From positions 21,328,001-21,392,000 of the forward strand of contig JAQFVV010000001.1 of the NCBI GenBank assembly GCA_028023455.1: DNA of 64,000 bases, in the 5' to 3' direction. A program made the translations under genes and the position numbers. Positions 445-50,594 of the stretch are shown in pieces. The notes below the pieces were generated by a model. It was not told where the DNA came from, made no database searches, and saw nothing but the letters and a program-made list of their open reading frames with translations. Position 1 is the first letter of the stretch. The number at the start of each line of letters is the position of its first letter. Source of the DNA: Epiperipatus broadwayi. Taxonomy: Eukaryota > Animalia > Onychophora.

Positions 445-3400
445 CTGTTGGGTGCACCATACTGTGCCGGTAGTTGGCGCTTTAGTGCTCATCAAGAAGC
501 ATGCAATCGATAAATTTCTTTTGAAGAAATTGTTCAAAATACGTAAATTTTAAAAAGTACACACACACATTCAAGTACATAAAATACCCCCCCCCCCAGT
601 GATTAACTGAAATGTCTCAAAAATAAGTAGAATACAAATTTAAAAATTGCTGCCCCAAGCGATTAATTGAAATGGCTCAAAAATAAATAAAATAGAAAAA
701 TTCATAAATTTTAAAGAAGTACACACACATATCAAAAACAGCAATAATGCCATTATTTTTTAAATCAAAACAACCACCCCACCCCGAATGAAGAAATAAC
801 TCAAAAATAAGTAAAATACAAATTTAAAAATTACTGAAATCAGTAAAATACCCTCCCCCCCCCCCAGCGAAATAAATGAAATACAAAAATTCATAATTTT
901 TTTAAAAAGTACACACACATCAAAAACAGCAATAACATCATTATTTTTTATGTTAAAAAAAACCACCCACCCCCTGAATGAAGAAATGGCTCAAAAGTAA
1001 GTAAAATACAAATTAAAAAATCACAGCCCCAAGCGAATAATTGAACGCACATTCATGCATATATGTTCTATTATCATTTTATTAAGTTGCTTTTAATTAA
1101 TATACACTAACTTGGAGGAGTTTAAACTAATAAAAATATACTACTATGGAACATAGTAGAGTAAAGCATTAGGATAGGTAAAAAATACCATTGCAATATA
1201 TTAAAAAATATAATCGCTTGGCAAAATGAAATGACATAAAACCCAAACTCTCACCCCCACCCACCCCTGCCAACTAATTTTTAAATTGGATTCATAACAT
1301 TGGATTATTTATATACTTATTTTGGCACTTTCATGTAATTAAAAGCTTAATTTATATAACTGAAATTATTTACTCATCATCCTATTACATAATTTAACAT
1401 AATATAGCATAACTATTCCTTGTCATGATGGGTTCTACTCTGACAACTCTATGCATTAATTAATAGATTTACTTTATTTGATTTATTTAAGATCCTAAAT
1501 AATAATAATAACTTGGCATCTTCATGACTTTGTCAGTCCAGTGGGGGGGGGGGGTTGAAAGAATCAGGAAGAAGCATAAACAAAATTTATAATTTAACTA
1601 TTGGTTCCTGCTATCATTCAAGGTAAATACAATTATACACACATAAAAAAATGTTGTCTATTAAAATGTGATAACTTATTTTAAGAAGTGATAACTAGAC
1701 CAGCAACAAGATTAATGATTCAGTGTAATAAATAAAATACATATAAAGATTATATAAATTATCTAGGTTAAGACCAGCAATAAAATTCTTACATTTTCAA
1801 GTTACAGTTATATGAAATAATAATATTAAATGTTTACTGGCATTCTTGGGGGCTTCTTTGAAGTGGTTGAGCAAATTCATGGTGAGAAATGGGTTGTATG
1901 TAATGAAAACATCTCTTCTTTATATTAAGCACAGGAACGGTTCAAGCTCTCAGTTCCCCACTGTTATGACCCAGAAAAGCTGATGCCAACTTGCTACCAC
2001 ATCTTTTCAGGTACAGTAGACATTGCTATTTTTATTTTAAGTGTAGGATAGTTTCAAAGTAGGTAAAAAAAACTATTCAAACTAAGACTTTTGCTCAAAA
2101 TACATAAATTTTTAAAAAGTACACACACATCAAAAACAGTTGTAACAGTCTAAATTTTATATTAAACTCCATTCCATATCAATCATAGCATATTCATATA
2201 TTTTCAAACAAAGATAAAACAACATGGGTATAATCACCTCAAGTGAGTTTCGTTTAGTTTAGATGAATTTAAAATTATATATGATTGAGAAAAACTTACA
2301 AGATTAGATTTAACAAAATTATACTAAACATAGAATAAGTGCTGTACTCCTAGAGCAATACTAAAATAGTTACAGTTGTTACCCTTACAGGGGAAATACA
2401 TTGTAATAGTAAATATGAATACAATGCATAGCAAAACAGAGTGGCAACATAGAGGTATGCAAGGAAGAAACACACTTAAAGAACATCTGCTAATAGTTTT
2501 TTTAAATATGCTGCAGGCAAAACCTCATGTATATAAGGAGAGAGAATGTCTTTATTATAGTTGATTTGATTCTTTTTACAATAATTATTAATATATGAAA
2601 TATTGAAGAACTGTTGGTGATAGAACTTTTACTATATCATAAATTAAAAATAGCAATATGTATTGTACCTGAAAAGATATGTAAGTCAGCATCAGCTTTT
2701 CCAGATCATAGCAGCTGGGAGCCAAAAGCATGAACCATTCTTGAACATAATGTAAAGGAGAGAAGATGTCCTCATCACCCACCATTTTTTCCTTGCCATG
2801 GATTCAATCATCTACTTTAAAGAAGCTCTCAAGAATGCTGGTAAACATTTAATATTATTTCATATAACTGTAACTTTAAAATGTAAGAATTTTATTGCTG
2901 GTCTTAACCTAGATAATTTATACAATCTTTATATATATATATATTATTTATTTTCTTGAATCAATAATCTTGAATAATTTAAACAATCTTTATATATATA
3001 TATATTATTTATTTTCTTGAATCAATAATCTTGTTGCTGGTTTAGTTATCACCTCTTAAAATAAATTATCACATTTTAATAGAAAACATATTTTCTATAT
3101 GTGTATAATTGAATTTACTTTGAATGATGGAGGGAACCAATAGTTAAATTATAAATCTTGTTTACACTTCTTCCTGACTCTTCCAAACCCCCCACTGGAC
3201 TGGCTGAGTCACAAAGATGCCAAGTTATTATTATTATTTAGGATCTTAAATAAATCAAATAAAGTAAATCCGTTGATTAACTTAAAGAGTTGACAGAATA
3301 GACCCCCATCATTACAAGAAATAGTTATGCTATATTATGTTAAATTATGGATGATGAGCAAATAATTTCAGTCATATAAATTAAGTATTTAATTACATGA

Positions 3401-5104
3401 AAGTGCCAAAATAAGTATATAAATAACCTAATGTTACAAATCTAATTTAGAAATTAATCAGAGAGGGGGTGTTTTATGTCTCATTTCATTTTGCAACTTT
3501 TAATATTGAAATGGTATTCTTTATCTATCATAATGTTTCACCTACTATGTTTCATAGTAGTATATTTTTCTTAGTTTAAACCCCTCCAAGTTAGCATATA
3601 TTAATTAAAAGCAACTTAATAAAATAATAATTATATGTATATGCATGTATGTGCGTATATTTATATAAATGCATACTTAATATAATACTAGATGAACATG
3701 CATAAATAATTACCAATTTAAAGTTATAAATTTAAATAATAGATGTAAACATTACCTGGTGTGGGGGTTTTCACACATACATATATGTGAAGGGAGTGAT
3801 AAGGTTATAAATTTTTAAGCTTTGCTATTTTTTTTTTTAATTATTTAATTCTAAGTTATAAATTTCCTTATACAAAATTTGCTTTTTTTTTTCATGTGTC
3901 ATAGCATCGGCTGAGAAGCGAACCCGCTAACTTGGGACAACTGCTTGTAAGGCAGCTGTGATGACCTCTCGACCACCAATGCTTGACAATTTGCTTTTCT
4001 TTGCATAAGAGTGACAATTTCAAGGTAGCCTATCCACATATATAGAGAAATATTTTTCCAAGCTAAAATTTGTTTTTGTAGTTTATTTCTTGGAAACTGT
4101 TCACCCACACCTTGGAAAAATAAAAATAAACTTGATAATAATTTTAAAATGTATATTTGGAACAAAGAGAAAGTTAGCCCATTTTTTAATGTTAAATTTT
4201 TCCCCTTTACTCAACATTTTCTTTCAAAACTGTTTTAATACATCATAATAAAAGTTAAGTAGGTGTATCAAAAGGTGCAACATGTCTATCCTTTGTATTT
4301 TTTCAATAATTGTAAAATAATAATTTTAAATTAGTGGGGGGGAGGGGCAATTTCTGTTTTTGCAATTTGTATTTTGCTTATTTTTGAGTGATTTTTTTAA
4401 TTTGTATTTTACTTATTTTTGAGTCATTTTTTCATTGGGGGGGGGGGGTTTAACTTAAAAAATATTGGTGTTATTGCTGTTTTGATGTGTGTGCGTGTGT
4501 GTGTGTGTACTTTTTTAAAATTTATGAATTTTTGTATTTTACTTATTTTGCTTGGGGTGGGGGATATTTTACCGATTTCTGCTAATTTTTAATTTGTATA
4601 CTTATTTTTGAGCCATTTCTTTATTCAGGTGTAGGATGGTTTTTTTTAACTTAAAAATAATGGTGTTATTGCTGTTTTGATGTGTGTGTATGTGTGTATT
4701 TTTTTAAAATTTATGAAATTTTTGTATTTTACTTATTTTGCTTTGGGAAGGGGGGATATTTTAGCAATTTCAGCTATTTTTTAATTTATATACTTATTTT
4801 TGAGCCATTTCTTCAATTAGGGGTGGGGTGGGGTTTTTTTAACTTAAAATATAATGGTATTATTGCTGTTTTGAAGTGTGTGTTTGTGTGTTCTTTTTTA
4901 AAATTTATGAATTTTTGTATTTTGCTTATTTTTGAGCCATTTCAATTAATTGCTGGGGGATGTATTTTATGTATTTTGCATTGTGTGTGCACTTTTTTAA
5001 ATTTAGGTATTTTGAGCAATTTCTTCGAAAGAAATTTATCAATTGCATGCTTCTTGATGAGCGCTGAAGTGCCATCTACTGGCACAGTATGGTGCACCCA
5101 ACAG
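445..5104. repeat. 4.66-kb nested imperfect palindrome (foldback-like): outer arms ~445-1045 / ~4330-5104, inner arms ~1060-2040 / ~2640-3650
   Basis: CTGTTGGGTGCACCATACTGTGCC at 445 is the reverse complement of GGCACAGTATGGTGCACCCAACAG ending at 5104. The outer arms consist of ~150-190-bp subrepeats (AAAAAGTACACACACATCAAAAACAG...). The inner arms match in reverse, e.g. CCAGAAAAGCTGATGCCAAC...CTTTTCAGGTAC at ~1970-2015 versus its reverse complement at ~2665-2710. No TSD seen. Confidence 0.85.
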
Positions 5105-5697
5105 TACCAAATGTTATTTTCAAATTATGATGTTTCCCATGTTGTTTAGATGAAAAATTTAGCTTTTTTCTTTCAAAATTTTTAAATCCTTGTTGAAAAT
5201 TTTATATATTTGGAAAAAATCTCTTTTGTCAAGTTAAAGTAATATTTCCAGCATAAATGAATGTCCTGCATCTATAAAATCTGTGAAAATATATTAAACA
5301 AAGTAGATGAAATAACTGAATCATGTGTTAGATCATTCTGTAAAATTTTATATTTTTTATGCATTTAATGACACTTCATTTTTTTATTAGAGAGCTTTTT
5401 TCAAGAAAATTAATGATTCTTCTGCATTTAAGGAATTTAGAAAATTTATCCAAACAAAATTATTAGTTGAAATTAGAACAATAATATTGCACTAGTTTTT
5501 AATTTATTTTGAAAACTTTTTCACCATGATTTTATATCAGCTTTTTTTTAATCTAAATAGATGTCTTTCAAATACTGGAAAATGTTTTATTAATATGATC
5601 CATTCAAATAGCATATAGAGAATACATAATAATCATATTGTTTTTATATATTCCCCTTTACTTTTTTTTTTTGCTTTTCTCATCATATATTCATATA

Positions 5698-8600
5698 AAC
5701 CTGTGTCTCATTTTATGTGGTAGATAGGTTCCTCAGAAAATATGCACAAAAGAAATCACATGAAAATTGACTTTTGAAAAATGGGGGATTGTACTATAAT
5801 TTTCAAAAATCACATAAAAGCAAAGCAACAATGTAAAATTACTTTAAAATTCACATAAAAAAATAAGGAAATAAAATATGACTAATAAAAAATTTCAAAT
5901 TTAAAAAAAATTGATACAAGACAAACTTTTTTTATTAACTACAGTATTTAATTTTTTTAAAACAATATATTTTTATATGTAATTTACAATATTTTACATT
6001 TTTTCATACATGTATAGTATTTTAATCATTATCGCTATTTGACAATATGCAAGTTTGTTTGTGAACTTGTAAGACATCAGATTCATCACAAGAGGAAATG
6101 CAACTAGTACCAACTTCAATTTTGTTAATTGCTCTTATAGTACACTTGCCCAAACTAAAATGTTTTCCAATCACTGTTGATCCTTCTCATTTGCTAAGCG
6201 ATCTAAAATTAAAATTTTTGTTTCAAAGAAATTCATTTTCTTAGGTGTTTTTCTCTCTTCATTAGGATAAACTAAAAGTTTAAAACAAAAATAAAAACTT
6301 AGACTTATGATGATAAAAAGACACCTACTCACCACTGTTGGGCAAAATTTAATTAAAACTAACAATTAAAAATTCAATTCTTATTCTTGTCTTTAATTTT
6401 TAATTTTCAATATTTTTTAAATATCAAATTTCATTGTTTCATATCACATTAATTTCAGATCATGTTATGTAATTTTTAAATTGTTAATTACAATTAAAAA
6501 TCAGATTTTAATTTTTAATAGTCAAATTTAATTGTGCCCACCACTGTTATTCATCTTTTAAAAATAAACTTGTGGACACTAAATGATTAATTGATTATGC
6601 ACTCTTTTTTTAAAAAGCAAAAATAGAATGTGATTTAAAACACAAAAACAACAACATGCATAGTATAGGCATCTGTAACGTTTGAACAAATTTACATTAT
6701 AATCTTGTAAAATTTATTACTTGCGGACACTAAATGATTAATTGATTATGTATTCTTTTTTAAAAAGCAAAAATAGAATGTGATTTAAAATGCAAAAACA
6801 ATAACATGCATAGTATAGTCATCTATAACATTTGAACAGATTTACATTATAATCTTGTAAAATTTAATGTGTGTATTGAAAGAGATTTTCGTTTCACCTT
6901 TTTTCACCTATTTCCTACCCTCATACCTTAGTTTGAACCCCAATCTATCGTAGTGTGTCTGCAATACACTTATATACCGAAAATCCCGCCTAATTTTAAA
7001 CCATGAATACAATGCTCATATTATATATATAACTCATTCCCAAATAAATAAAAGATTATAGATTATGTATATGTTCACATAATTTTGATTTATTAAAAAG
7101 TAGGTTATATAAGTCGTAATTGTGCACACACTATGATATGCATTTATAACATATCAAAATTATAAATTGTTAAAAGTTATTTTGTTTGAATCTATTTACA
7201 AATATATATTACTGTCGTAATATATTTTGATTTAAAATAAAATTCATTTAGTAAATATTCGTTTAGTAAATAGATTCAAATATTGCAATTTAAAAGTAAA
7301 ATAATTTTAGTTTAATTTAATAAAAGTCATTCCAAATATTTCTGTTAAAATAAATGAGGGACGATAGTATAATTAGTTAATGTTATATAAGTTTATCTAA
7401 AACAGCAGATGTCCACTTAAGGTTTTCTTTAATTAGTAAGAGTAATTTTTAATTAAATCTAGTTTGTAATTCAAATGTTGAAAGGGAAGATAACAAAAGA
7501 AATTAATTAAAATTTTGTTGAATTCCTTTAGACATTCGAATAGATTTAATTACAGCTGATAAGTCCGATATATTTTTGTAATGCTCCAGGGCAGTTCTAT
7601 TGTTAAATTCTACTATAAAAGGAGTGTTTTCTTTTGTTCTGGATTCTAATGTTTCTCAGAGAAATCATTCTGAGGTCTAATGTTTCTAACCAAAATTATT
7701 GTAGTAATTTGTAAATCTTGACATGATGGAGTAGAGCGCAAGAAGGCTATTTCTCTCTGGAATGGTCATATGCTGCCGTAGACCATCGGAAGTTATCACA
7801 CAAGGAACCCGAGAACTGCTGCCGCTGCCAAATATATGAACATTTCCAGATTTTGCTGTTAAATTATATAAAAACCTGCCAACCATCAATCTACCCAAAA
7901 TGCTTCTCCAGAGGTAATCCTAAATTAACCCAAGAGCTCTTGTGATAACTAACATGCTATAGCTATTTTAAATTTTCTTATATTTCACATAACGTCATTA
8001 TGTACTTCTTTAAATATAATCAATATTTTGCTCTCTATCCTTGGGTTAATATTTTCTATTGATTAAGCTTTCTGTTATTTTATTATGATAATGTGTCAGA
8101 ATCATCTTTGACCGAGTGAATTATTCCTTTTGTTGAAAATAAGATGCCGCTATGAAGGCATATTTTAAATTTCTAAATAATTTCCAATTTTATTATCTTG
8201 CAAATCACTTGTTCGAGGGCGATTCTTTTCTTTAATATATAATGTAATCACATAGTTTAAAATCTACATGTTATTGATTTTAATCTAATATGAGAGTATG
8301 TGCGAGGTCAATGATTAAATGTGTCCCCTAATGCATGATTGCGTATATAAATCTATACTTACTTTTCAAACCCGCAAGTATGCATTTTCCTATTTTAATT
8401 GCCATGTTCTACTTTAATTACAAAGTTCATCATTGACATCGAGAATGTGCGGACCCTTTTAAATGAATTTCTGGGAATTTGATTGGGCATTTCTCTTAAT
8501 CCAAGTAAAACCCATTCAGTATGTTTTATATACACTAGTCTCGTATTGCTGGTAAATGAATTGGTTGTTGAGACTGCTTTGTTTTACTTTTCCAAGGATT

Positions 8601-19260: not shown

Positions 19261-19632
19261 GATTCTAAAAATAAACATTTATTTTAAAATGCTACATTAT
19301 AAAAATAAATCATTAAATCAAAATTAAATAAATTATTTTATTTATTAGATCAATAGTTATAACATTATTTTAAAATCTTATCTCAACCAATTATGATTTA
19401 AAATATTTTGAATAATTGAAATATAACTGTATTCTTAACCTTCATTTAAACATAAACAACATATTTATATAAATTATCAAATTCCTTATTGTAAAGATAT
19501 TTATTTAAATATACTTAAAACATTCGCTCCATCATACATTTTTAAAAGATATGTGTGAATAAAATAAGATGTCCACAAAAAGAAGTTGGATTATTAATTT
19601 CATGTGTTTATGTTTAATTAAAATACATATAT

Positions 19633-22384
19633 TGTACCTGTCAGAATTGTATGTTCATTTAACAAGGTTTAGAATCTAAGCAAAAGTACCCTAAATCCAC
19701 TCATGCCCGAGATACACAAGTCAGGAGCAATCATGAATTCTGCCCTATTTGCTCTTCTCTAAAACTATAACATTATAAACAACACTTCTGATGATAACAT
19801 GAAATTTTATTCATTCTGGTCCCAGAGACACAGCAAAGAAACACTAGGGTAATTAATGTAAATAAATAATATCAAATCTTGGCTCAATCAAATATCTTAT
19901 GTGAAGGGGTAATTTATAAATTTTAAATGAATTACACACAGCTAGCATTGCAAAAGAAACATGAATTATAAAATAGTATCCATCCAGAATGAGCAAAGAT
20001 AGAACAACCTAGAGATAAATGTTCATTTAAAATAATCAATTATAACTTCTAAACATTACTAACACTATTATAAATATTTAATGGAATTCAATGAGTGAGA
20101 GTCAGTAAGACACAATGCATGAGTAATTATTAAAACATAATAATTTAATAAATATAAACAATTTAATTTACATTAGAAAACATAGCACAAATTTAATGCA
20201 GTTATTACTTTGCAAATAAGCAACTGATTTGGTATGCTAATGAGTTATAGTATAATAATAAATTAATGGTATCAATGCGGTGATCATTACTTTAAGTAAT
20301 GATAAGGACATTTACAGATTCATCTCTAAAGAGAGGTTTACTCCTGATATGATAGTTAATAATTTATTGTTTATGAGCATATTTGGGCCTGTACAAATGA
20401 GGAATGGGTTAGCCTAAATTAGCTTTACTGTGACAATCCTAAAATATTTGACTAATTATAAAATGAGTGGTTTACAAACATCACTGCGCCACATCTTATA
20501 AATAATATGAGAACTACCCATAAAAGAACTCACAGTGCTAACTATAATGACAGTGTTTAAAATGGAGAAGATGTCCGTCTTGGGACTGAAAAACTTTATC
20601 ACATATATGTATCCTCTTGTATTTATCACAAGGCAGTATTCTAAAATATGAATGGTAAGGATTCCATGGTATGCCCTCCAATGTGTCACATGCATAGCCT
20701 TAATACTCTAATGTTTATCCCGAGATCGGTTCTACCAAACCTCATTCCTAGATGAGTTACGTGAAGAAAATACGGAGTTTGGATAATAAATATGATAAAG
20801 CAAAATATAAGTACTTTAAAATGCTATCGTAAGTAAGCAATGCGAATATGGCTTAAGTCTTAAATGACTAATGAAATAATTTAAGCTTAAATAAAGCAAT
20901 AATATCATATGTAATGCCATGATAAAATAATAACCCACTCAGCATCGTACGTATAACTTTAATAAATTTAGGATGTCGAATATAGAAGAGGGAAAATATT
21001 ATTTCATATTCAACAAGTCCAAGTATTTTAAACAACAATATATTATAAGCAATTTAACTCTTAATGGCGTATAAATAATAAATAGTTATTAAAATATATT
21101 AATAATCAAATTTATTTTAAGAAGATAAAATGCATTTAAATATCGATAGTGATGACAACAAAAGGTTTATCTTATGCCATAATATAATTTTTAAACCATC
21201 TGCCATTAAGCATATATTTCAAATATTTAACCGAGTGAACAGCGTTCAGTAAGAAATTTTACGTTTAACTATTTAAATATTCCAAAATATCGGAATGATG
21301 ATTGAAATAATATAAGTTTGCTAGATTAAAACATTAGCATACTAAAACTAATTTAATAAGATATATATTTAAAATAAGTTTTTCTGCATGAAATAAAATA
21401 ATTAGAGTGTGAAACTTAAAAAGCTAATGATAGATTTAAAGTACATAATTCTGTGCTTAGCGTTTCAAAGAACCAGTTTAAAAACTTAAGAGAGAAAATC
21501 ACAAATTTAATGATAATTAAGTTTATAGTCAGTTATAAAATAAATAAAAATTACATTCTGATTACAATTAAGATTTAGGAAAGAAATGAAGTGAGGATAA
21601 TTAAGAGTTCATTCTTCGGCAAAACGGATTACCTTTAGTATTTATGGCGGCCATTTAGCATAAAAACACGAAGTTTGGATGCAAAGGCAGAATCTTGACA
21701 AAATAATGGTAAACATCTTCAAATAGTTCTTCCACAGTTAAACATAACAGTTCTGAAGTAGCGATGGCATGGCAGAAGGCAGGTCAGAGGTGATTTAAGA
21801 TCAGGGAGGCAAATTCCTTTTACTCACAGTCCATTTTGTTTCCACTTTCTACACAAATACCAGAGAAAAGAGTGATTTGAACTTCTTTTGAGCATTTCTA
21901 GAACTTCTGCTCCTACTATACTTGAAATTTGGCAATATTGGAAGATGTAAACAATACGTTCCAGAAAGCATTATTTAAATGTATTTTTTAAAATTGCAAA
22001 TAACTTTAAAATATGATTTTTGGTTTGACTTGAAATGAGAATGACATTTTTAAATTGTAATAATACTTTTTAGAATTTTCTGGCATTGCTTTAGCTTTAC
22101 ATTAATTTTATTTATTTTTATATCTGTAATACATATACGCATATACACAATTATCCAAGTGAAGGGAATTTACAAGCTTGAAAATAAAATATACTTAAGC
22201 TAAAATAATAATTCAACTGGTTACACATAACCATTTCTTAAATAAACAGGGTGGAAGTTATATGCATGTGCTTAACATTCCTGGATGACCAAATAAACAT
22301 ATAAACTGGTTCAAACCCTACTTTAAAGGTATGTAATGTCATCAGACAGTGAAGTTAAATATGTACTACAGATTTACCACTTCA
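19633..22384 (-). repeat. 3' LTR (2752 bp)
   Basis: Second copy of the LTR, ending ATTCTGACAGGTACA on the minus strand and followed by the ATAT TSD. Confidence 0.92.
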
Positions 22385-22546
22385 CATTCCCGTAATTAGA
22401 GGAACAAACACAAACAAAAAAAAATTGTTAAAAAAAAAAATGATTTGTCATCAGACAGTGAAGTTAAATATGTACTACAGATTTACCACTTCACATTCCC
22501 GTAATTAGAGGAACAAACAAAAAAAAATTTGTTAAAAAAAAAAAAG
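22337..22546. repeat. 109-bp tandem duplication spanning the PPT / 3' LTR junction
   Basis: TGTCATCAGACAGTGAAG...CACTTCACATTCCCGTAATTAGAGGAACAAAC...AAAA starts at both 22337 and 22446. Confidence 0.9.
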
Positions 22547-22699
22547 ATTTTACTTATACTTTTAAAAATTGTTATTCCAAGTAGCAAAGAAACACATGGT
22601 CAACTAATAATAGCAAACTAGTCTGTCTATTCCCCACTATTATGTTTATATCTCACTTCATGAAATTCTAATCACAATATACTAATTGGGATCTCCCTA

Positions 22700-22953
22700 T
22701 TCTCTTAAGTCTTTTTGAAAATCAATGGTCTGTTCTGGTGCATTATGCCATCCTATCAATCTCAAAATACTTTTTACTATTCTTTTCCCGGGTCGGGCAG
22801 TATATACAACTTTAATTGGCATGCAGCATTATTATACTTAAGAACCTTAAGCCACACTTGATCTACACAAATTCTATGATGAGGAATATGCCCCTGCCTA
22901 ATTCTAATTTTGGCCATATGAGCTAACCTTGATCGAGCACGTTGCTGGTCACA
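22700..22953 (-). pseudogene. probable Gypsy integrase C-terminal (GPY/F-region) remnant, fused in frame to the MELT segment
   Basis: QQRARSRLAHMAKIRIRQ...DQVWLKVLKYNNAA matches the AR..L...A..R......F..GD.V.LK...LSNAA pattern of Gypsy integrase tails. LIGWHN in a shifted frame (~22760-22742) resembles G.HNV. Composition and CpG content change abruptly at ~22953. Confidence 0.45.
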
Positions 22954-24645
22954 TTTTTGATGGATACAAATACTCTTGTTCAGTAAGGATTTACAAATAT
23001 CTGTATCACTATAACTAATATTTCTAAAAATTTTAGGTTTATCTAATATTGGGTTTGTAATCATCTCCATCTCAAAAACATTATTACTACCACTAAAGAT
23101 GATATTCTTATTGGTTGCAGGATCAATATGTTCAGCAATAAATAAATTCATTTCATGAAACTTTACCTCTTCATACTTTTCAATAGTATAAATAAATGCA
23201 CGAACATTTTCTTTATCTATAGCAGTTTTGATAGATTTATTAATAGAAAACCGAACATTTTCTTTACCATAAGCAATTTTTTGAAAACACTGTCCTATAG
23301 AAACTTCATCAATACACTCTGCTATTTTCATATCAATATCTTGGAATTTAGAAAAATAATCAGATTCTTGTTTACTGATCAAAGAATGTCTATCAAATTT
23401 CTTTTCAAAATTATTAGTAACTATAACATCCATATCTTTAGTGTTTAGTAAAGTCAATTTTGAATCCACAGAGAATGAATTGTTAAAATAATTTCCTGCT
23501 TTCATTGTAGATGCTATATCCCAATTAGAATTTATATTCTTAGCATGGGGTTCACTAATATTTGAGATTAGATTTTTCTCAATCTTCCCAAAATGACAAT
23601 TCACTTCAATTTGCTTTTCAATTATGTCACCCAAACCAAGAGAATTTATTTCTATATTACTTCTATTTACTTCATCTAGAGAATCTACTTCAATGGTATT
23701 TCCACTATCATGCACCAAATAGTTCAAATCCATCTGCCTCTCATTAGCATCAACTACATTAGGCAAACAAGTAGTTATTTCCATATCACCTTTATTTAAA
23801 GAATCACTAAAATTCATCTTGTTCTGAGAATCCATTTTAGTAATATTCACAACTGAATTCTTTTCATGATTATGAGTAATATAATTTAATTTAGCTTCAT
23901 CACCAATTTTGTTAGACAAGCAAGAAGCAAATTCCATATCATTTCTGATAGAAGGATTATCTAATTTATAAAAATTACTAGTTTTCTCAGATATCAATTA
24001 ACAATGTTGAGTGTTAACAGTGTTTGAAGGAACCTTGTCATTTTCTTTATCAGAGATGATAGTTTTCTGCAGACATTTCTTGCCAGTTTTAATATTATTT
24101 ACACCAGTTGTCATTTCCATATCATTAGTTATTGAAATATTTATGTTCTTATCAACTTTGATAAAATCATTTAAATAAGTTGATATTTTTATATCATCTG
24201 TTATGGTATTTAACTTATTACACCTTCTTTTCTTAAAATTCTGAGCAGTAAAAGTAAAATAATCATTTGGCATGAGTTTTCTTTTCCTACAATCTAAACA
24301 TTGCTTTTCAGAAAATGTCTGGTTTGATAAACAGTCATGTGTTTTTTCAAACATTATATTTTTATTTGAAAACTCTTTATTAAGACTTTCAAAAGATTTT
24401 GCAGCACATTCAGATAAAAAGATGCCCGGTTCAATTTTACCCATTAAAAGAGAATCACTTTTGTGAAAGGGTAGCGTTTCATATCTGTTATCTAATGCTT
24501 GAACTTTACAATTACTTTTATCTAACTGTTTATCAATCAATACATTTTTACCACATTCATTTAACAAAGCATTACCTAAATATGGAATATCACTAGAACC
24601 ATCTTCAAATTTGTTTTCAGCATGAAAAATAATTCTATCACTATC
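22954..24645 (-). pseudogene. KNL1/Spc105-like MELT-repeat segment captured inside the LTR element (one in-frame TAA at 23998-24000)
   Basis: Intronless, Asn/Asp/Ser/Lys-rich, disordered-type frame with repeated motifs NDMEMTT (~24120), NDMEFAS (~23935), GDMEITT (~23780), QMDLN, KDMDVIVT, IDMKIAE and EMEMITN (~23065). Some are preceded by hydrophobic-Phe-Ser boxes (NKMNFS, KNIIFS). Three KEN motifs (DKEND, GKENVRF, DKENVRAF). MELT arrays with upstream hydrophobic motifs define the KNL1 N-terminal region. Confidence 0.55.
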
Positions 24646-26151
24646 CATCTTTCCAGCAATTCTAACATTAATACAAAATTTAAGCTCATTCTCTTCATTA
24701 ATTGATAAATCTTCATGCAAATCCATTGCAGAATCTAAACATCTTGTTGACTTATCATTGCTGAAAGAATTCAAAACAAATGGCTGAATTTGGTTTTCAT
24801 CAGGTACTGTGTTAGAATCAAATGAAATTTCTTCTTTTTGATAAATCTGACTAACTGTAACAAATTTATTGATGGAGGTATCAATCAAAGTTTCACAATT
24901 TGATTGATTATCTGGATTATAGAGTGGATCTATAAACTTTTCAACATTTTTAGACTGATATTCCAATAAAGAATCTCTTTGGATTTCTGTTGGAACATAC
25001 AATTTAGATGATTCCATCCTGTTTGTTTCTTCTGCCTTCAAAAGATAACTGGGATCAAGCTTTTCATCAGACAAAAAGGGATCCTGAGTAGAAATATTTT
25101 CATCACATAAAGTTATATCTTTGGGTGTTTCAACATTAATAGCATTTCTATTAGTTTCTTTAACCATATTTTCCTGATAGTTCAAATCAGTTTCACATTT
25201 TTGTGTCATAAGAGAATCCAGACCTTTCATATTTTAATCATTATTTTCAGAGTCTTTAAAATCCAGTTGTATCTTTGTCTGAGTTTCTTGAAATATGTAT
25301 TTAATCTCATTTTTAGACATCTCATATTCATATTTAGCCTTATTATCTGGCTCATAAAGATGATCACTAATTTCTCCTTGGACTACTTGGAAATCTCCTA
25401 ATTGTTTCTCATGCTTTATCATGTTCTGTTGTGGATATTCTACTTTCATCTCTTTGACAGCAAGTGATCTTTTACATAATTTTGCTCCCTCCATTCTTCC
25501 ATCTTCTGATGTCTTTCAGCTCGTTCTTCTAATAGAACCTGCACCCTCTTCTGGGATTCTTCAATTTCTTTGTCCATCCATTCTTCCATCTTCTGTTGTC
25601 TTTCATCTTGTTTTTCAGCTTCTCTCTTCCAGAATTCCTCAGCATCTTTCTTCCATTCTTCAGCTTCTTTCTTCCAGAATTCCACTTCTAACTTCCAGAA
25701 TTCTTCATCTTCTTCAGCTTCTAACTTCCAGAATTCTTCATCTTCTTCAGCTTCTAACTTCCAGAATTCTTCAGCATCTTTCTTCTGAATTCTTCAGCAT
25801 CTTTCTTCTGTTCTTCAGCTTGTTTCTTCCAGAATTCCTCATTTTTTTCTTCTGTTCTTCACCATATTTCTTTATGAGATCTTGCATCATTATATATAAC
25901 TGGTTATTGTCAATGACCTCTGGTCCCTTATTCACATCTCCCAACAAAAGCTCTGGCTCCTTGAAAGTAATTTCTGGGCTGAGAACATCCATTGAATTGG
26001 CATCCCCTAAAAAATCTTGTTCCAACTCCCCATTACTGCTTCCATTCTCATCTTCTAATTTGTTAATCTCTTCTGAATCTCCGTATCCGTATTCTTCACT
26101 ACTTATTTCATATTGTTTCATTTTACTGATATCGCTAACTCTATGACTCAT
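24646..26151 (-). pseudogene. decayed gag-like ORF with Glu/Lys/Trp coiled-coil repeats, ending at a possible protease N-terminal fragment
   Basis: It is the first ORF after the leader. QLYIMMQDLIKKYGEEQKK is followed by repeated (D/E)AEEFWK(K/L/R)E units. At least three frameshifts (A7 at 25842-25848, ~25755, ~25495) and a TAA at 25234-25236. ELKFCINVRIAGKM (~24690-24646) resembles the segment just before a retroviral-type protease D-T/S-G motif, which is missing. The gag identity is inferred from position and composition. Confidence 0.5.
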
Positions 26152-26296
26152 TATTATTTGCTATGGGTTATTTGCCTATCCCTTTTCCCCAATCGCCTCT
26201 ATACTACCATTTCCCACCATACCTACTACTTTCTTCCTGCCCTGCCCAACTTATATGATGCCTAACCACTTTATTATTTATGCCTACTCTTCTCAC

Positions 26297-26407
26297 TACT
26301 TGAATCTGCCTATATCATTTAAGCTATATATTATACTTGAATCTGCCTATATAATTTAAGCTATATATTATACTTGAATCTGCCTATATCATTTAAGCTA
26401 TATATTA
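26297..26407. repeat. 37-bp tandem repeat x3 in the element's 5' leader
   Basis: TACTTGAATCTGCCTATAT(C/A)ATTTAAGCTATATATTA occurs three times head-to-tail. Confidence 0.9.
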
Positions 26408-27229
26408 TAAAATTATTAACTATTAATTCTATAACACAAAATATATTTAAAAATTACCATACCTTTAGTTCTTTTGCCACTTTCCATCTGTTCTCTTTGC
26501 ACCTGGAATTGACTAAAAATCTTTATTAGAAAATTGATAATACAAAGTATAACAGAAAGCCAAAGCAAAGTATGATTTTCTCTCTTTTAAATATTTGCTT
26601 GCGTTTGAATCTCACTCAATGTAAGTTATGTTAACACATGAACTAACTGGTTGGCAAAATTTATAATTGTATAAATACAAGGCGCCATGCCAACATGGCA
26701 AGATTAATAACTTATTACACAATATTTAGGTTATTCATGCTCACAGAGATGGACACCAAAATTTCCTTTTGCATTGATCAAACAATTCAAAATTATTATA
26801 CTGAACAAATATATATTTTATTTTCAATGCTGTTTTGAAATCAACAAGATACATCACTATATGTATCTCTTTGCAATAATCTGCAACAGCTATAAAATTT
26901 ATTTCACATAAATAAACCTTATGTATACATAAAATAGTGTTTAAGGTGATTTTATGTTATAATCTAGCAAATAAAGCTAAGAAAATATTATGACAATATG
27001 CAAGTTATACAACATGGATTGACATCATTTAGAATAAAACAATTTATTTCATGAATAGTTATTATTTACTATAAACTAACAATGCGTGACTAACCTAAGT
27101 TTGAATATAGGAATTTAACTCAATTATCTATCATTTCCAAGGAGTGTGAGGCTATCATAAAATGTCAAAATTAATATTCTTCCCAGTAATTTATATTTAT
27201 CGATATCAATTTTCACTTTCGCTTGCATA

Positions 27230-27605
27230 AGAATATGTAAACCATTAAAGCATTTTGCCAACTACATCTGGCTGCTTGGTGTTACATAAAAGGTCTTCAC
27301 CTGCTTCGAGGTTACTCTAATAATAAGAAACGAACATTTAAAATATCAACTAGCAAGCAACTTTTCTTTTGCTAGCATGAGAACATGTAAACCATTTAAG
27401 CATTTTGCCAACTGCATCTGGCTGCTTGGTATTACATAAAAGGGTCTTCACCTGCTTTGAGGTTACTCTAAGAATCAATGTCATTGAAGCATAATGTCCA
27501 CTACATTGGACCGCTTGACATAGAATTCTATTTTTAAGGTCTTCACCTGCTTTGAGGCTACTAATAATAGGAAACGAACATTTTAAATACTTGCTAGCAA
27601 GCAAT
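27230..27605. repeat. ~150-bp tandem repeat (about 2.5 copies) in the element's 5' leader
   Basis: GCATTTTGCCAACT(A/G)CATCTGGCTGCTTGG...AAGGTCTTCACCTGCTT(C/T)GAGG...GAAACGAACATTT recurs at ~27250 and ~27400, and partially at ~27535. Confidence 0.8.
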
Positions 27606-28124
27606 ACTTTTATATTAAAGTTTTTAACATAATATCGATATTGGATACTTCTAAATATCAAAACTGAGATATACACTACTTAATTCTGACAAAGAAAAAT
27701 TATTTCTTTCATCCATTCTACCCCTTGCTCCAATCTACTCTTACTACCTTTCTAACACTTTAATTTTCTTTCTCCTTATTGTCACGAACACATATTAACA
27801 AATGTATAATATATATACACTGAGATAGTACAAGCTACACATATAATTAATTTATATATCTATTAACTATCTTATTACTTTTTAAATAATTATTTTGACT
27901 AACAATACTGTTTTACTCATATAGCTTATGGTATTTAACCAACAAAATTAATTAATGAGCCTACATTTAGATAATCTTGGAGACATTAAAATATAAGCCA
28001 CCAAAAACATAAACACTTTACAAGGTCTGGTATTTAATTAATATAGACCCCAATGATTGAGCCAACAACAAGATAAGCAGTCTACAGGGTGTGAGATTTA
28101 ATTAATCGAAGCCCCAAATGTTTG

Positions 28125-28132
28125 GGTCGCCA
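28125..28132 (-). promoter_or_regulatory. candidate primer-binding site (tRNA-Arg-like, TGGCGACC)
   Basis: TGGCGACC is complementary to the ...GGUCG-CCA 3' end of metazoan tRNA-Arg(UCG), the primer of 412/mdg1-type Gypsy elements. The match is only 8 nt and lies 24 nt from the LTR end. Confidence 0.45.
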
Positions 28133-28156
28133 AGCCCAAGAAAGAAAAAAAAATCC

Positions 28157-30916
28157 TGTACCGGTCAGAATTGTATGTTCATTTAACAAGGTTTAGAATC
28201 TAAGCAAAAGTACCCTAAATCCACTCATGCCCGAGATACACAGGTCAGGAGCAATCATGAATTCTGCCCTATTTGCTCTTCTCTAAAACTATAACATTAT
28301 AAACAACACTTCTGATGATAACATGAAATTTTATTCATTCTGGTCCCAGAGACACAGCAGAGAAACATGAGATCTATAGGGTAATTAATGTAAATAAATA
28401 ATATCAAATCTTGGCTCAATCAAATATCTTATGTGAAGGGGCAATTTATAAATTTTAAATGAATTGCACACAGCTAGCATTGCAAAAGAAACATGAATTA
28501 TAAAATAGTATCCATCCAGAATGAGCAAGAACAGAATAACCCAGAGATAAATATCTATTTGAAGTAATCAGTTATAACTTCTAAATAATATTAATATTAT
28601 TATAAATATTTAATGGAATTCAATGAGTGAGAGTCAGTAAGACACAACGCATGAGTAATTATTAAAACATAATAATTTAATAAATATAAACAATTTAATT
28701 TACATTAGAAAACATAGCACAGATTTAATGCGGTTATTACTTTGCATATAAGCAACTGATTTAGTATGCTAATGAGTTATAGTATAATAATAAATTAATG
28801 TTATCAATGCGGTGATCATTACTTTAAGTAATGATAAGGACATTTACAAATTCATCTCTAAAGAGAGGTTTACTCTTGATATGATAGTTAATAATTTATC
28901 GTTTATGAGCATATTTGGGCCTGTACAAATGAGGAATGGGTTAGCCTAAATTAGCTTTACTGTGACAATCCTAAAATATTCGACTAATTATAAAATGAGT
29001 GGTTTACAAACATCACTGCACCACGTCTTATAAATAATATGAGAACTACCCATAAAAGAACTCGCAGTGCTAACTATAATGACAGCGTTTAAAATGGAGA
29101 AGATGTCCATCTTTGGACTGAAAAACTTTATCACATATATGATTCCTCTTGTATTTATCACAAGGCAGTATTCGAAAATATGAGTGGTAAGGATTCCATG
29201 GTACACCCTCCAACATGTCACATGCATAGCCTTAATACTCTAATGTTTATCCTGAGATCGGTTCTACCAAACCTCATTCCTAGACGAGTTACGTGAAGAA
29301 AATCCGGAGTTCAGATGATAAATATGATAAAGCAAAATATAAGTACTTTAAAATGCTATCGTAAGTAAGCAATGCGAATATGGCTTAAGTCTTAAATGAC
29401 TAATGAAATAATTTAAGCTTAAATAAAGCAATAATATCATGTGTAATGCCATGATAAAATAATAACCCACTCAGCATCGTACGTATAACTTTAATAAATT
29501 TAGGATGTCGAATATAGAAGAGGGAAAATATTATTTCCTATTTAACAAGTCCAAGTATTTTAAATGACAATATATTATAAGCAATTTAACTCTTAATGGC
29601 ATATAAATAATAAATAGTTATTAAAATATATTAATAATCAAATTTATTTTAAGAAGATAAAATGCATTTAAATATCGATAGTGATGACAACAAAAGGTTT
29701 ATCTTATACCATAATATAATTTTTAAACCATCTGCCATTAAGCATATATTTCAAATATTTAACCGAGTGAACAGCGTTCAGTAAGAAATTTTACGTTTAA
29801 CTATTTAAATATTCCAAAATATCGGAATGATGATTGAAATAATATAAGTTCGCTAGATTAAAACATTAGCATACTAAAACTAATTTAATAAGATATATAT
29901 TTAAAATAAGTTTTGCCGCATGAAATAAAATAATTATAGTGTGAAACTTAAAAAGCTAATGATAGATTTAAAGTACATAATTCTGTGCTTAGCGTTTCAA
30001 AGAACGAGTTTAAAAACTTAAGAGAGAAAATCACAAATTTAACGATAATTAAGTTTATAGTCAGTTATAAAATAAATAAAGATTACATTCTGATTACAAT
30101 TAAGATTTAGAAAAGAAATGAAGTGAGGAGAATTAAGAGTTCATTCTTCGGCAAAACAGATTACCTTAAGTATTTATGGTGGCCATTTAGCATAAAAACA
30201 TGAAGTTTGGATGCAAAGGCAGAATATTGACAAAATAATGGTAAACATCTTCAAATAGTTCTTCCACAGTTAAACATAACAGTTCTCAAGTAACGATGGC
30301 ATGGCAGAAGGCAGGACAGAAGCGATTTAAGATCAGGGAGGCAAATTCCTTTTACTCACAGTCCATTTTGTTTCCACTCTCTACACAAATACCAGAGAGA
30401 AGAGTGATTATTACTCCTTTTGTGCGTTCCTAGAATTTCTGCTTCTCCTATACTTGAAATTTGGCAATATTGGAAGATGTAAACAATACGTTCCAGAAAG
30501 CATTATTTAAATGTATTTTTTAAAATTGCAAATAACTTTAAAATATGATTTTTGGTTTGACTTGAAATGAGAATGACATTTTTAAAGTGTAATAATACTT
30601 TTTAGAATTTTCTGGCATTGCTTTAGCTTTACATTAATTTTATTTATTTTTATATCTGTAATACATATATGCACATACACAATTATCCAAGTGAAGGGAA
30701 TTTACAAGCTTGAAAATAAAATATACTTAAGCTAAAATAATAATTCAACTGGTTACACATAACCATTTCTTAAATAAACAGGGTGGAAGTTATATGCATG
30801 TGCTTAACATTCCTGGATGACCAAATAAACATATAAACTGGTTCAAACCCTACTTTAAAGGTATGTAATGTCATCAGACAGTGAAGTTAAATATGTACTA
30901 CAGATTTACCACTTCA
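28157..30916 (-). repeat. 5' LTR (2760 bp)
   Basis: Minus strand starts TGAAGTGGTAAATC and ends ATTCTGACCGGTACA. Near-identical to 19633-22384 (5 mismatches in one 120-bp block compared by eye). Confidence 0.92.
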
Positions 30917-31649
30917 ATATATTAACGTTTGACTAGATTTAAAAATCATATATGAGCTAAAACTGTTAGATAATCTCTAAATTAGTAAATAATTAGTAAT
31001 AATCATTAACATATTTATATGAATTGTGTCAAAGTTGTGTATGCATAAATTTGACCTTGTAAATCATATTGTATTAAAAATGGAGAAAATAATATATATA
31101 TTGAACCAAATGCATTATCTATTTAAAAAGTTCCATCATGAAATTAAAACATATTTTGTTTTATAAAGTTTTAAAAGAAAACTATTTTAAAGTTTTATAT
31201 GTTATAGCAGACATATGCAGCTATATTTTAATCTGTGATTTTAATTTTGTCTTCAATCGATTTTACTTTTCAGTTTAAAAATGTTTCTTTTGACACTTTT
31301 TTTAATCAAATTGTAAAAATATTTTAATTTGAAAACTTTTAATCTTTTGGAAAGAGCTTTTCATTTTGGAGAGTTTTATTTGCATTCCTGTTTTTTTGTT
31401 TGTAATCTAATTTTAATTTATTTGTAAAAAGAAGGCTGAAATTTAATTTTACACTTACTTTTTTTTTTAATTCTTTTGTATAAAATAGGAACCCTGGTCA
31501 GATTTTTAATTAAGATTGAGTCTGAGGTAGAGATTTTCCCTGAGCAAAAACTGCTAATTAAAGATGTATTTGGATATAAGAGTACATATAAATAACCCTG
31601 AGATTTCATACTAATTATTATTTGGCTATTTATTTTTATTCTGCTTGTT

Positions 31650-41749: not shown

Positions 41750-44700
41750 ATACATATAAACAAGAAAATGAGAAGGTTTACATTAAGTATAGTAGGTTCA
41801 TATAAATGTTCACTCTCAATTACATTATACTAGATCTGATAAAACCCTGTTGATTAGTGGAAAACAAATTATAAGACGGTTACAAAATGAAAATAATATG
41901 TGTGAATTTACTTCTAATAGGTTGTTAAATAAGGTTCCAGATGCATCCTTATTATATGGTAATATGTTAAACAATAGGGAAAAAAGCAAGTCAACGTGTA
42001 AAATAATCAAAGCAAGATGGGGTTTTGAAAGTTTGACCAGACTAAAGATTAAGTCCATATTGAAGCTCAGCAAGACAAGATAAAGTTCAAGTGCATATTT
42101 GGGGGGACATGGAAATTAAAAAAACAAAGGGAACTAGAACCCCTCTGAGTTCCAGGTTTGATCTGTGAGCCATAGCATACAAGTTTTCTTGTCTTTATCC
42201 GTTGATTTCCACTGTAACCTGAAGAATAGTACATCTATGGAACAGTCAAAATCCTTTTTGAATGGTGCCTGGCATCTAATTGCCCACATTATAAAGTTAA
42301 TGTGAAGAGCTAATTGAATAAAGCCAAATGAGCCTTTATTGATAGTGAATTAGGTGAACTTGAGCCAGATCAGGCATTGTCATTTTTATTTGGGCAATGT
42401 TGCAAAGATGAGCTTACATTTCACATTGACTAAGGATGTGAGTCATTGACTCATCATGCTTTTGACATAAGGGGCAGATGGGGTCTATTTTGTATCCCCT
42501 TTCAAAGCAAAGGAACATACCAGAGTGTATGGCAGCAAGGTTGACCTTCTAAAGGAAGTTCACAAACTTTGATTTTATTTTAAGGAACTTGGTGAATCAG
42601 GTAAGATGGGGGATCTCAACTGGAAGAATGTTTTGAGTCTTGGACTGTCCAACATTGACAGCAGGTAAGAATCCCAGTAGGTCATCTTCTCTTGAAATAA
42701 TGAGTGAGAAGTTTTAATTGTGTTGAGCACCAATGTAAGTTGTTGCTGTATCCAAAGGATTGTCTCTCTAGAAGGGAGCCTATCTGTAGTCTTGACCTCC
42801 TCTATGGGAAAAGGCTTTGAATGTTTAGGTTGTCTCTGAAAATCTTCACAAGGATATTATTCTTTCGCTGTGTAAAAAACACCTTGATAGAGTGTTGTCC
42901 CAAATCCAAGGGATTTGGGCTTTTGGAGTAAATTTAGGCTGATGACAGGAGTTTGCCCCATCCAGCACAATTTTTGCACAGGGTTTCAACCTTCCTGATA
43001 GAGGTGCTAGTAGGGTAGAAAATGGTGGGGTAATATATGATCTTTGGCAGAATAACAGTATGCAGGAGAGCCATCTTTACAAACAAGAAAAGGAAGATCT
43101 TGAATAAGGAGTTGATGGTGTTTCAATTTTTGTTAGAAGAGAACTCTAAATGTTTTCTCATTACTGACATGGTGAGGCAAGGTGAAAACCAAGAAACTTC
43201 TGAGGAGCTATAAATCTACCCATGATTTGCTTCCCCATCAAGATGGACCACATAGCTGATTTCCTTCCATTGACTCACAGACTGAATTCATGAGCAAGGT
43301 GGTCCAAAAGTTCTTTGAACCTAGTAAAATCATCCTGAGATGAGAAAAATACCATGTCATTCATATAGAATATGTGGTGTATGCTCTCTCCCAGCAAAGA
43401 GATAACAATTACCAAAAGAACAGCCTCTATGCATAGCAGCAATGTGTTTCTATATGCCATAAAAAGGAGTGCACTTAGTGGTGAGCCCTTAGAGATTGAC
43501 ACACAAGACTAAAACCCTGGGGAAACTCTTTTGTCCAGTAAGAGAAACAGTTCATAATTTTGTAGGTTCTTGATCATCTGGATGTATGCCAATGGCACTT
43601 GGAGCCCCACTAATGAGCACCTTGATCCAGATGCAGTCAAATGCACTGACAAAGTCAAGTTGGATTGTGACTGGATGAGACATCCTTTTCCTGTGCACAT
43701 GATCCACCTGAAGGCAAAACCTGCTGATAATATCAGTGGTCGAACTCCCTCTTTTGGCAAACTAATAAGAGGATAGCTGTCCAATGATGTTGTCTTGGAC
43801 ATCCTCATTTATAAGGCCCTTTATTGCTTTGATCAGCAGTGAAACCATGGAGATTGGATGAAGGTTCTTTAGGTCACTTAGGACTCTCAGGTCTTTTGAT
43901 GAGAGGAACCATTGTGATCAGGCAGTGTCCAGCCACCACTTGACTTCCACCAGCCAAAAAACTGACCATTTTCATGACATTTGGGATCATGATGGCATGC
44001 AGGTGTAGCAGTAGGAATTTAGGAATTCCATGAAGGCCAGGATGAGTCCCATTGGAAAAGGATTTAATATTCATTAATACTTCAGCCTCAGTGACCTTAT
44101 GTTTATCTGCATCCTCCCAGAAGTATGGAAGTGGTCTGAACCCAGGGGCTGAAATTTATTTGGAATAAAATTCCCAGATCCTGGCCAACATAAAAGAACC
44201 CAAATAACAATTGTCCCAGACCTCAATAGATCTAGGGGTCTTAGACTTTTGGACAGAACTCATGGCCCACTGGAGATAGTTCCTGGTCAGCAATGTTGTT
44301 GATGAAAGTACTGTGGAGTCCTTTTGATGGAGAGGTACTCAGCAGTGGCTTTTTGTTTGGATTTGTACTCTATCTTCAATGCAATTATTCTGGTGATGTT
44401 CTATACTTCATGAGGCAGGTTTTTCCATTCATATGCAATGGAAAGGTTCACCAAGAAGGTGAACAGTACCTTTAGAATATGCTGTGCAAGAGTCAATTAG
44501 ATTACTTAGGGTTTAGGAAAAGATATTTTATGCTTCTTCAGCAGAGAGGATTAACAGTTTTTCCCTGTGAAAGGTGATCTATGTCTGCAAAACCAGCTTG
44601 ATTGTAATATTGGCTTGAGCTAACATTCTGATGGTTCTGGGTAACTCAATTATGGGTTTATTGGCTTTTGGTTGATTTAGTTTGACTTCCAATGCATAGT

Positions 44701-48190: not shown

Positions 48191-48955
48191 TATGTAAACA
48201 CAATTTATTTTTAAAAATATTTAAGTAAGCATATGTATATGAATCAGCATTAAAATGTCCTCTATTGAATTCTATATACAATACGATATTAAATAATATA
48301 TAAAGTAACACTACATATCCACAGTCTCATTAATCAGAAATTTTCATAACTATAGATTTGAAATATATATATATATATTGTAACGGTATATGCCATTACA
48401 TTAATTTAAAATTAGAATAATTTTTTTTTTTAATTCGTAAATAAAAACTAAAAGCTAAAAAGAATTAAAAGTTGTTTAACGTATATAATATATCGCACAG
48501 ATGCAAAACTTTAAAGTTATTTTTTTTTTTAAATAAAAAAAAAAGTATTTGAACATACTTTTTTATAAAAAATTATAATATCTAAAGATAAAATATATTT
48601 GTTAAAAGATTATTATGTAGTCTCAGTAAATGGAAATGATTGTTTTATAAATTAAATAAAAAGCAAACTAGCACTTGGGGCTCTTATATAAAAAAGTCAG
48701 ATGAAATATAGATAAGAGAACAAAAATAAATTAGATGTCCAATAGAAGCAGCAATGAAGGCTTGGACTGTAATGAAAATTTGGAACAGGAAACCATTGTT
48801 CAGTGAATTCGGTTGATCGGTATAAAAGGAAAAAATATTGAAATTAAAAACAGTTCCAGCTTGATTTTTTTTGAGGAGTGTGATAAGATGCAATTGTCAC
48901 TCTCTCTTTTATTTCAAATGAAATGACTTATGAATTATAAATGGTACTATTTCAG

Positions 48956-50533: not shown

Positions 50534-50540
<7 letters not shown>

Positions 50541-50594
<54 letters not shown>
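50541..50594. repeat. (TA)n microsatellite
   Basis: TA dinucleotide run. Confidence 0.95.

Follow-up and report, generated by a model that had tools for sequence, protein, structure and literature searches.

Acutely transforming retroviruses transduce v-onc genes via read-through and template switching, and the maize element Bs1 is reportedly a gene-transducing, non-autonomous long terminal repeat (LTR) retrotransposon. Further LTR elements that carry host gene fragments appear in a review (PMC13317346) and in an account of maize cases (PMC2774510). Here we describe an element of this kind in the onychophoran Epiperipatus broadwayi, located at positions 19633-30916 of a 64,000-nucleotide (nt) stretch of contig JAQFVV010000001.1 (positions 21,328,001 to 21,392,000 of the forward strand, assembly GCA_028023455.1). 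This whole stretch is referred to as the window, and coordinates below are window coordinates unless a contig is named. A preliminary description of the window had presented the element as an LTR retrotransposon in which the pol gene was replaced by an array of MELT motifs like that of the kinetochore scaffold protein KNL1/Spc105.

As a whole, the element is best explained as a dead copy of a high-copy, helper-dependent Ty3/Gypsy family with a captured host exon, a reading to which we assign a probability of roughly 0.78. It adds a clear new case to a known process, the capture of host genes by LTR retrotransposons. Plants and transforming retroviruses offer ample documentation of this process; among animals, clear endogenous cases are few, the more so those for which both junctions, the helper, and the donor locus are all established. 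The present case is unusually clean, with one capture, in-frame junctions, a donor exon boundary that coincides with a junction, and copies that outnumber the helper by about 10:1.

In the gene-transducing LTR elements of maize and rice, part of the interior is replaced by intron-free host fragments, the LTRs, primer-binding site (PBS) and polypurine tract (PPT) are kept, and autonomous relatives are needed; the window family appears to be similar in all these respects. Unlike the plant cases, it resides in an animal genome, a single capture has been amplified to hundreds of copies, and the cargo is in frame on both sides (with the Gag N-terminus and with the integrase tail) and open across sub-families. 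As in acutely transforming retroviruses, where the product is often a Gag fusion, gag-pol appears to have been replaced by spliced host mRNA sequence, leaving a helper-dependent element; unlike these viruses, the window element is endogenous, vertically inherited, and decaying, with no sign that the cargo was selected for activity. LARD and TRIM elements (PMC4717578) likewise keep the cis-acting parts, are mobilized in trans, as we propose for the window family, and outnumber their autonomous partners, but their interiors are non-coding (PMC4717578), whereas the window family has a chimeric frame of 1,000-1,100 codons.

The element lies on the minus strand (30916 -> 19633), as does every long open reading frame (ORF) between its LTRs, and its interior between the LTRs measures 5.8 kb. 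Two other loci in the genome (5.6 Gb, AT-rich) are essential for its interpretation, namely a pol-bearing relative on contig C12561 and a host exon on contig C6219. In element order, the features are:

28157-30916, minus strand: 5' LTR, 2760 nt, with TG..CA ends; 96.4% identity to 19633-22384.
30917-30922, with a second copy at 19627-19632, no strand: ATATAT flank, possible target-site duplication, within an AT-rich/(AT)n target.
28120-28132, minus strand: PBS-like TGGCGACCCAAAC, separated from the 5' LTR by 24 nt; conserved in the pol-bearing relative.
26152-28119, minus strand: long untranslated leader with a direct repeat of ~110 nt; 89-97% identity in all copies and the pol-bearing relative.
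25249-26151, minus strand: Gag N-terminal (pre-capsid) part with an acidic stretch and a coiled coil; common to the pol-bearing relative up to ~25248.
25019-25248, minus strand: cargo part A, ~76 codons; not in the pol-bearing relative, and presumably derived from one or more upstream exons of the donor mRNA.
23005-25018, minus strand: cargo part B, derived from the initial ~2 kb of a host exon that bears a MELT-like array; homology to C6219:8407373-8410645.
22777-23004, minus strand: integrase C-terminal (SH3_Tf2-1) stub and stop codon; BLASTP E 2e-27 to the end of the relative's integrase.
22385-22500, minus strand: 3' untranslated end, with PPT-like GGGAATG adjoining the 3' LTR; the duplication at 22446-22500 is also present in the relative.
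19633-22384, minus strand: 3' LTR, 2752 nt, from self-comparison; Kimura two-parameter distance (K2P) 0.0347 to the 5' LTR.

The paired 2.75-kb LTRs of the preliminary description were recovered as a direct repeat by self-comparison of the window (2760 columns), with 93 differing sites (69 transitions and 24 transversions), 8 gap columns, a K2P of 0.035, and TG..CA termini when read in the orientation of the element. Its further claims on the ends of the element hold in part. ATATAT is indeed present at both flanks, inside an AT-rich/(AT)n tract where it is weak evidence of a target-site duplication. The PBS-like site is a TGG-initiated 13-mer (28132-28120) as in the pol-bearing relative, placed 24 nt inside the edge of the 5' LTR, and the PPT-like site at the 3' LTR consists of GGGAATG only, which is short and duplicated. 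Between the LTRs, a single frame runs from 25494 to 22777, ending in TAG (22779-22777) and broken, as originally described, by two TAA codons (25236-25234 and 24000-23998). Both TAA codons are private to the window copy when compared with other family copies, as is a 1-nt deletion at 25469 that separates the frame from the upstream coiled-coil part. With these three lesions and an LTR divergence of 3.5%, the window copy is inactive, in agreement with its description as decayed.

No ORF in the element has a Pfam match to protease (PR), reverse transcriptase (RT), RNase H, or the integrase core, so that the reported lack of RT and RNase H stands. The reported gag-like ORF is correct for the N-terminal part (no Pfam match at 25249-26151) and needs correction beyond it: only the pre-capsid N-terminus is kept, and the Retrotrans_gag capsid portion lies in the replaced stretch. 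The integrase-tail-like stub is what it was taken for, being the last 75 residues of the integrase with a 40-residue internal deletion in the SH3 domain (E 2e-27 to the relative), and the relative's own integrase end matches PF24626 (SH3_Tf2-1) at E 4e-5. Two strict MELT-like motifs (MEMT and MEIT), degenerate ones in addition, and three KEN triplets are found in the window copy.

The pol-bearing relative was delimited by two LTR matches 13 kb apart on C12561 (C12561:2433201-2448970; LTRs 91-93% identical). It has the leader and ORF start of the window element, and its interior encodes, in order, Retrotrans_gag (sub-threshold, E 8e-4), RVP, RVT_1, RT_RNaseH, Integrase_H2C2, and SH3_Tf2-1; it is a bearer of a Ty3/Gypsy polyprotein. 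The Ty3/Gypsy order of PR-RT-RNase H-integrase is therefore absent from the window element and present in a sister with the same LTRs, which makes the window element a non-autonomous derivative and not an autonomous member. Alignment between the two is confined to 28156 -> 25248 and 23001 -> 22385. In between, 6.85 kb of the sister, from capsid to integrase, is swapped for 2.25 kb (25248 -> ~23005) that has no similarity to the C12561 element; its absence from this relative marks it as foreign to the family. About 30 pol-bearing relatives were found among the scored matches, at 77-94% identity, and as some have long open frames, potential helpers exist.

The family is large. All copy counts given here are first-look candidates of which only part was scored, and are lower bounds. 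A query with a 1233-nt ORF segment returned at least 195 candidates (40 of 40 scored were full-length, at 93-96% identity), a protein query of the cargo returned 372 with identities down to about 60%, and the first 917 nt of the LTR returned 1756 in the genome. The Gag N-terminus has matches at ~640 loci. The cargo-bearing family thus has at least 200-370 copies with the same two junctions, against about 30 pol-bearing sisters, a roughly tenfold excess. In 12 copies with the whole interior and 26 (20 + 6) partial ones, the order of segments is identical and both junctions are common to all, which argues for a single capture. Uninterrupted frames of 950-1140 codons run across both junctions in other copies, from an MSHRVS.. 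start (window 26151) to ..PDPGKE. Logan contigs of four runs, three with the source label and one with a second label, carry pieces of the cargo with few differences (queried with 22385-26400), so the family is not a product of assembly; it probably predates the split of the two organism labels. No loose ends leading to a second context at the two junctions were seen among the contigs listed.

These results also bear on two reservations made in the preliminary description, that the cargo might be a regular extra ORF of autonomous members and that the paired LTRs might be an assembly duplication. We found no point in support of an accessory ORF or of an assembly artefact, and regard either as having next to no probability. 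Where the window family has its cargo, the pol-bearing relative encodes capsid, PR, RT, RNase H, and integrase, none of it similar to the cargo; dozens of dispersed copies have the same architecture, and the cargo recurs in the contigs of the four runs. With 93 differing sites between the LTRs, and with the architecture of the window element present at more than 40 other loci, an assembly duplicate is excluded.

A number of smaller features were observed in the family. GGGAATG, together with the first 48 nt of the LTR, is duplicated at 22446-22500, 54 nt upstream of the true start of the 3' LTR. The same duplication is found in other copies and in the pol-bearing relative, and is possibly a second plus-strand priming site. 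The two units of the leader repeat lie at 27475-27366 and 27324-27216, and their copy number varies among family members. Both the window copy (flanks 19603-19632 and 30917-30946) and the C12561 relative are inserted in (AT)n/TATATA tracts, which suggests that this integrase lineage prefers AT dinucleotide repeats as target. The coiled-coil Gag part (25500-26100) is a variable tandem repeat of KKxAEEW-type, heptad-like units, in which copies differ by gains or losses of 100-240 nt; contigs of low-coverage runs are ~100 times deeper on this repeat than on the cargo, indicating that the segment is common to many more elements than the cargo family. At C6292:1601700-1616700, two cargo-bearing interiors of like orientation are found at a distance of 8.3 kb, a spacing that fits a tandem LTR-interior-LTR-interior-LTR with a common middle LTR, the product of unequal recombination. 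Lastly, in a run guessed to be RNA, one contig at window 24966 terminates with GAGTTCTACAGTCCGACGATC, which is the Illumina small-RNA 5' adapter. This run may be a small-RNA library tiling the cargo, and would then hint at coverage of the family by PIWI-interacting RNA (piRNA) or small interfering RNA (siRNA).

The preliminary description had posited a parental cellular locus for the cargo, while allowing that no cellular gene might match. A host exon does match, at C6219:8407373-8410645 (locus L045), although its identity as KNL1 is unproven. The locus matches the cargo only (window 25011 -> 23004, 78-80% DNA identity), and no LTR, leader, Gag, or integrase sequence is found around it within 10 kb. 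It consists of an open frame of 1091 codons, where other stop-free stretches on the strand reach at most 84 codons, and is bordered by a pyrimidine tract with ..TTTGCAG/G before it and CAG/GTAGTT at its end (the slash marks the border); these splice-like borders indicate an internal exon. The 858 nt of the exon beyond the homology to the cargo have one full-length match in the genome and one partial match of 204 nt at 79%. With a single full-length match of its tail, the exon is attributed to a host gene and not to another repeat.

The boundaries of the homology are informative on its direction. The similarity starts no more than a few bases from the host acceptor; upstream of this point the host has an intron and the element has 76 in-frame codons ending in ..CAG, as would be seen where two exons have been joined. 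Towards the 3' junction of the element, the similarity is gradually lost at window ~23005-23020, the point at which integrase-derived sequence starts, and the host frame continues for about 290 codons. An intact natural copy of the element and the exon have 51% amino-acid identity over 812 columns, and the host exon has one more block of repeat units than the element. This evidence points to capture from a spliced host mRNA, and the acceptor boundary, the exon tail, and the integrase boundary together give the direction from host mRNA to element. The opposite direction, in which the C6219 exon would be a domesticated or stray piece of the element and not its source, is highly improbable. The element is admittedly far more abundant than the single host locus, and an identity of 78-80% alone gives no direction, but the C6219 locus is free of element sequence, its frame runs past the 3' junction of the element into a near-unique tail, and the homology starts at a canonical splice acceptor, where the element continues as other coding sequence. 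The earlier proposal of a non-autonomous element carrying a captured cellular fragment as an in-frame Gag fusion is therefore supported, with a single-copy, intron-bounded exon as donor.

Two observations around the donor may be added. Neither cargo nor element sequence lies near the partial match of the exon tail (C6261:846124-846313, L054), which may represent a paralogue or a pseudogene of the donor gene in fragmentary form. Window 48364-50566 and the intron downstream of the donor exon (L045, minus-strand 6447-8493) share an unrelated dispersed repeat (68-77% identity).

We propose that the ancestor of the family lost about 6.85 kb, including the Gag capsid, protease, RT, RNase H, and most of the integrase, and gained about 2.25 kb of host mRNA in place of the lost stretch. 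The capture would most likely have occurred through two switches of template while co-packaged RNAs were being reverse-transcribed. Its product is a frame of 1,000-1,100 codons, in which the Gag N-terminus is followed by a host-derived disordered segment and then by the integrase SH3 remnant. The family appears to have kept the LTRs, PBS, PPT, and 2-kb leader of its pol-bearing sisters, and would be mobilized in trans by the sisters' proteins. The frame may have been kept open by exposure of transcripts with a premature stop to nonsense-mediated decay or RNA instability, or by a need to translate the Gag N-terminus in cis.

As to the nature of the donor gene, the KNL1 repeat unit consists of a TOmega box followed by a MELT motif, ME[LF]T being the usual form in arthropods (Tromer et al., 2015; PMC4558858), and we took the definition of the unit from that study. 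The C6219 exon contains six strict M-[ED]-[LIVMF]-[TS] motifs, mostly of the form D-M-E-[MLI]-T-[TS] and including a literal DMELTS, besides MQLT and MEMV variants. Three of the six are preceded, 8-14 residues upstream, by [TS]xx[FY], the TOmega box. Composition-matched shuffles contain on average 0.17 strict motifs and 0.03 with TOmega, and 0 of 2000 reach the observed counts. Similar to KNL1/Spc105/Spc7 (PMC4558858), the donor exon thus has units of an acidic residue followed by Met-Glu-x-Thr with an upstream TxxF/Y, in a long disordered exon with turnover of units; unlike them, it has no significant profile or sequence match, the protein phosphatase 1 (PP1) docking motifs are represented only by an RVxF-like KYITF that precedes the array by about 70 residues (in the element, KNIMF), neither a C-terminal coiled coil nor an RWD domain was located, and copies of the element retain 1-2 eroding motifs. 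No SILK motif was found in 10 kb around the donor exon.

Several results weigh against the account given so far, some against the capture and others against KNL1 as donor. The loss of a donor intron is supported by one boundary only. No source of cargo part A (~76 codons) was found in the 2.85 kb that precede the donor exon, and among 201 candidates for it, the 150 scored were all at 75-100% identity, the range of element copies, with none on C6219. Contigs that span both junctions come from the run guessed to be RNA, which is a guess only, as it may be a small-RNA library. For the donor, the nearest named cluster in the protein-language Atlas ('KNL1 fragment, PF19221 MELT') scores 0.75, below the reliability line of the tool, and KNL1-like naming occurs in only 2 of the 10 best named matches; window ORFs gave uninformative look-alikes there (BRCA1-like disordered fragments at 0.8, or no usable match). 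The only Pfam families listed for the donor exon are the two MELT families, at insignificant values (PF15402, E 3.1; PF19221, E 7.6), and neither was listed for the window ORFs. Searches of libraries of 5.8 and 1.8 billion proteins recovered no homologue of the window ORFs, the intact copy, or the donor exon, and a PDB search returned no match. Six-frame searches of the genome for Knl1_RWD_C (PF18210) and Spc7 (PF08317) gave only matches with E>1, on contigs other than C6219, and no KNL1 gene was located by genome-wide Pfam searches for MELT, Knl1_RWD_C, and Spc7. These negatives are weak where KNL1 is concerned, given that the arrays evolve fast and that the C-terminal domains are likely split over small exons.

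On balance, we consider it somewhat more probable than not that the donor gene is KNL1. The serious competitor, to which we give a lesser but still considerable weight, is another host protein that is long, disordered, and repeat-bearing, whose likeness to MELT arose by chance or convergence; the capture itself would be unchanged. For such a protein speak the lack of any significant hidden Markov model (HMM) or sequence match to KNL1, the RWD and Spc7 searches without a match on C6219, the low Atlas score with its two agreeing matches, and the origin of the repeat units by internal duplication, because of which the motif counts are not independent. A protein of that kind would, however, have to account for six strict motifs including DMELTS, three of them with [TS]xx[FY], at counts that no shuffle reached, and for a motif core that is conserved across otherwise diverged units. 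The giant single disordered exon, with a number of units that differs between cargo and host, is likewise as known for KNL1 (PMC4558858), the MELT families were the only ones that Pfam listed, and the rapid evolution of KNL1 arrays is known to put them beyond the reach of homology searches. The origin from KNL1/Spc105 claimed in the preliminary description is only partly supported: it agrees with the six-motif TOmega-MELT array of the donor, and finds no backing in HMM or homology searches or in RWD or Spc7 domains. Because sequence homology was tested for and not found, the cargo is not to be filed as a member of the KNL1 family; it carries a fragment of a KNL1-like array. Should the donor be KNL1, the genome would contain hundreds of decaying fragments of a kinetochore checkpoint scaffold, with a risk of false KNL1 paralogues and inflated gene families in annotation, and also with a dated series of neutrally evolving MELT units for comparison with the selected host array.

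The cargo shows no sign of constraint at the amino-acid level. By the Nei-Gojobori method, which is visibly biased in this AT-rich sequence, the ratio of non-synonymous to synonymous substitution rates (dN/dS) is 0.86 in pairwise comparisons among 33 young copies, 0.73-1.28 between sub-families, and 0.81-0.98 between element and host exon, against lower values (0.36-0.81) in wrong-frame controls. The motifs have eroded: strict motifs number 1-2 in copies of the element vs. six in the host exon, the host unit DDMEMTT reads DDIKMAT in the element, and about half of the 33 copies have another residue in place of the phospho-acceptor Thr of unit 3. Identity to the window at motif sites is 0.77-0.95 vs. 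a cargo average of 0.87, so the motif sites are no better kept than the rest. The cargo looks like a decaying passenger.

The frame itself behaves somewhat differently. Between sub-families that differ at 200-320 sites, the observed substitution spectrum predicts 6-10 new stops, against 0-3 counted (in one comparison 0 against 7.9 predicted, P 4e-4), in a test that is partly biased, some loci having been chosen for their long open frames. The 33 copies, which were selected by identity, have about 0.9 premature stops each. The depletion of stops between sub-families suggests that the lineages that kept transposing kept the frame open, an effect that is partly ascertainment. An open frame without amino-acid constraint raises the question of what non-autonomous LTR elements need from translation.

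The preliminary description had suggested that intact copies could encode a checkpoint decoy or give rise to new kinetochore paralogues. A functional chimeric Gag-cargo protein, acting as a Bub3-Bub1-binding decoy or as a seed of such paralogues, would agree with the frames of 950-1140 codons in many copies and sub-families, with the depletion of stop codons relative to neutral expectation, and with the three KEN triplets, which are retained in 29-31 of the 33 copies. The KEN triplets, however, are no better kept than the average site, and dN/dS is about 0.9 among copies, between sub-families, and against the host exon, above the wrong-frame controls; with the erosion of the motifs in addition, including the DDIKMAT unit and the lost Thr of unit 3, the suggestion is not supported and such a function is very unlikely. 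We hold a related idea to be improbable as well, if less so, namely that the lineage is a serial exon-capturing vehicle, in which the Gag coiled coil is fused, at one recombination-prone junction, to fragments of different host mRNAs and the chimeric frames are kept open by selection. If this were true, there would be hundreds of expressible Gag-host fusion genes, titrating partners such as Bub3 or seeding new genes.

Other repeats are present elsewhere in the window. The only GC-richer part of the window, at 42-48 kb (GC ~40%), contains a short minus-strand ORF (43275-43502) with an RT-like motif (..YMNDMVFFS..), which is probably a decayed non-LTR retrotransposon. Near the start of the window, a cluster of inverted and direct repeats (438-5149; e.g., 1045-1762 vs. 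3656-2974 at 83%, and 4394-4739 vs. 4586-4932) marks another repetitive element or a satellite-like block.

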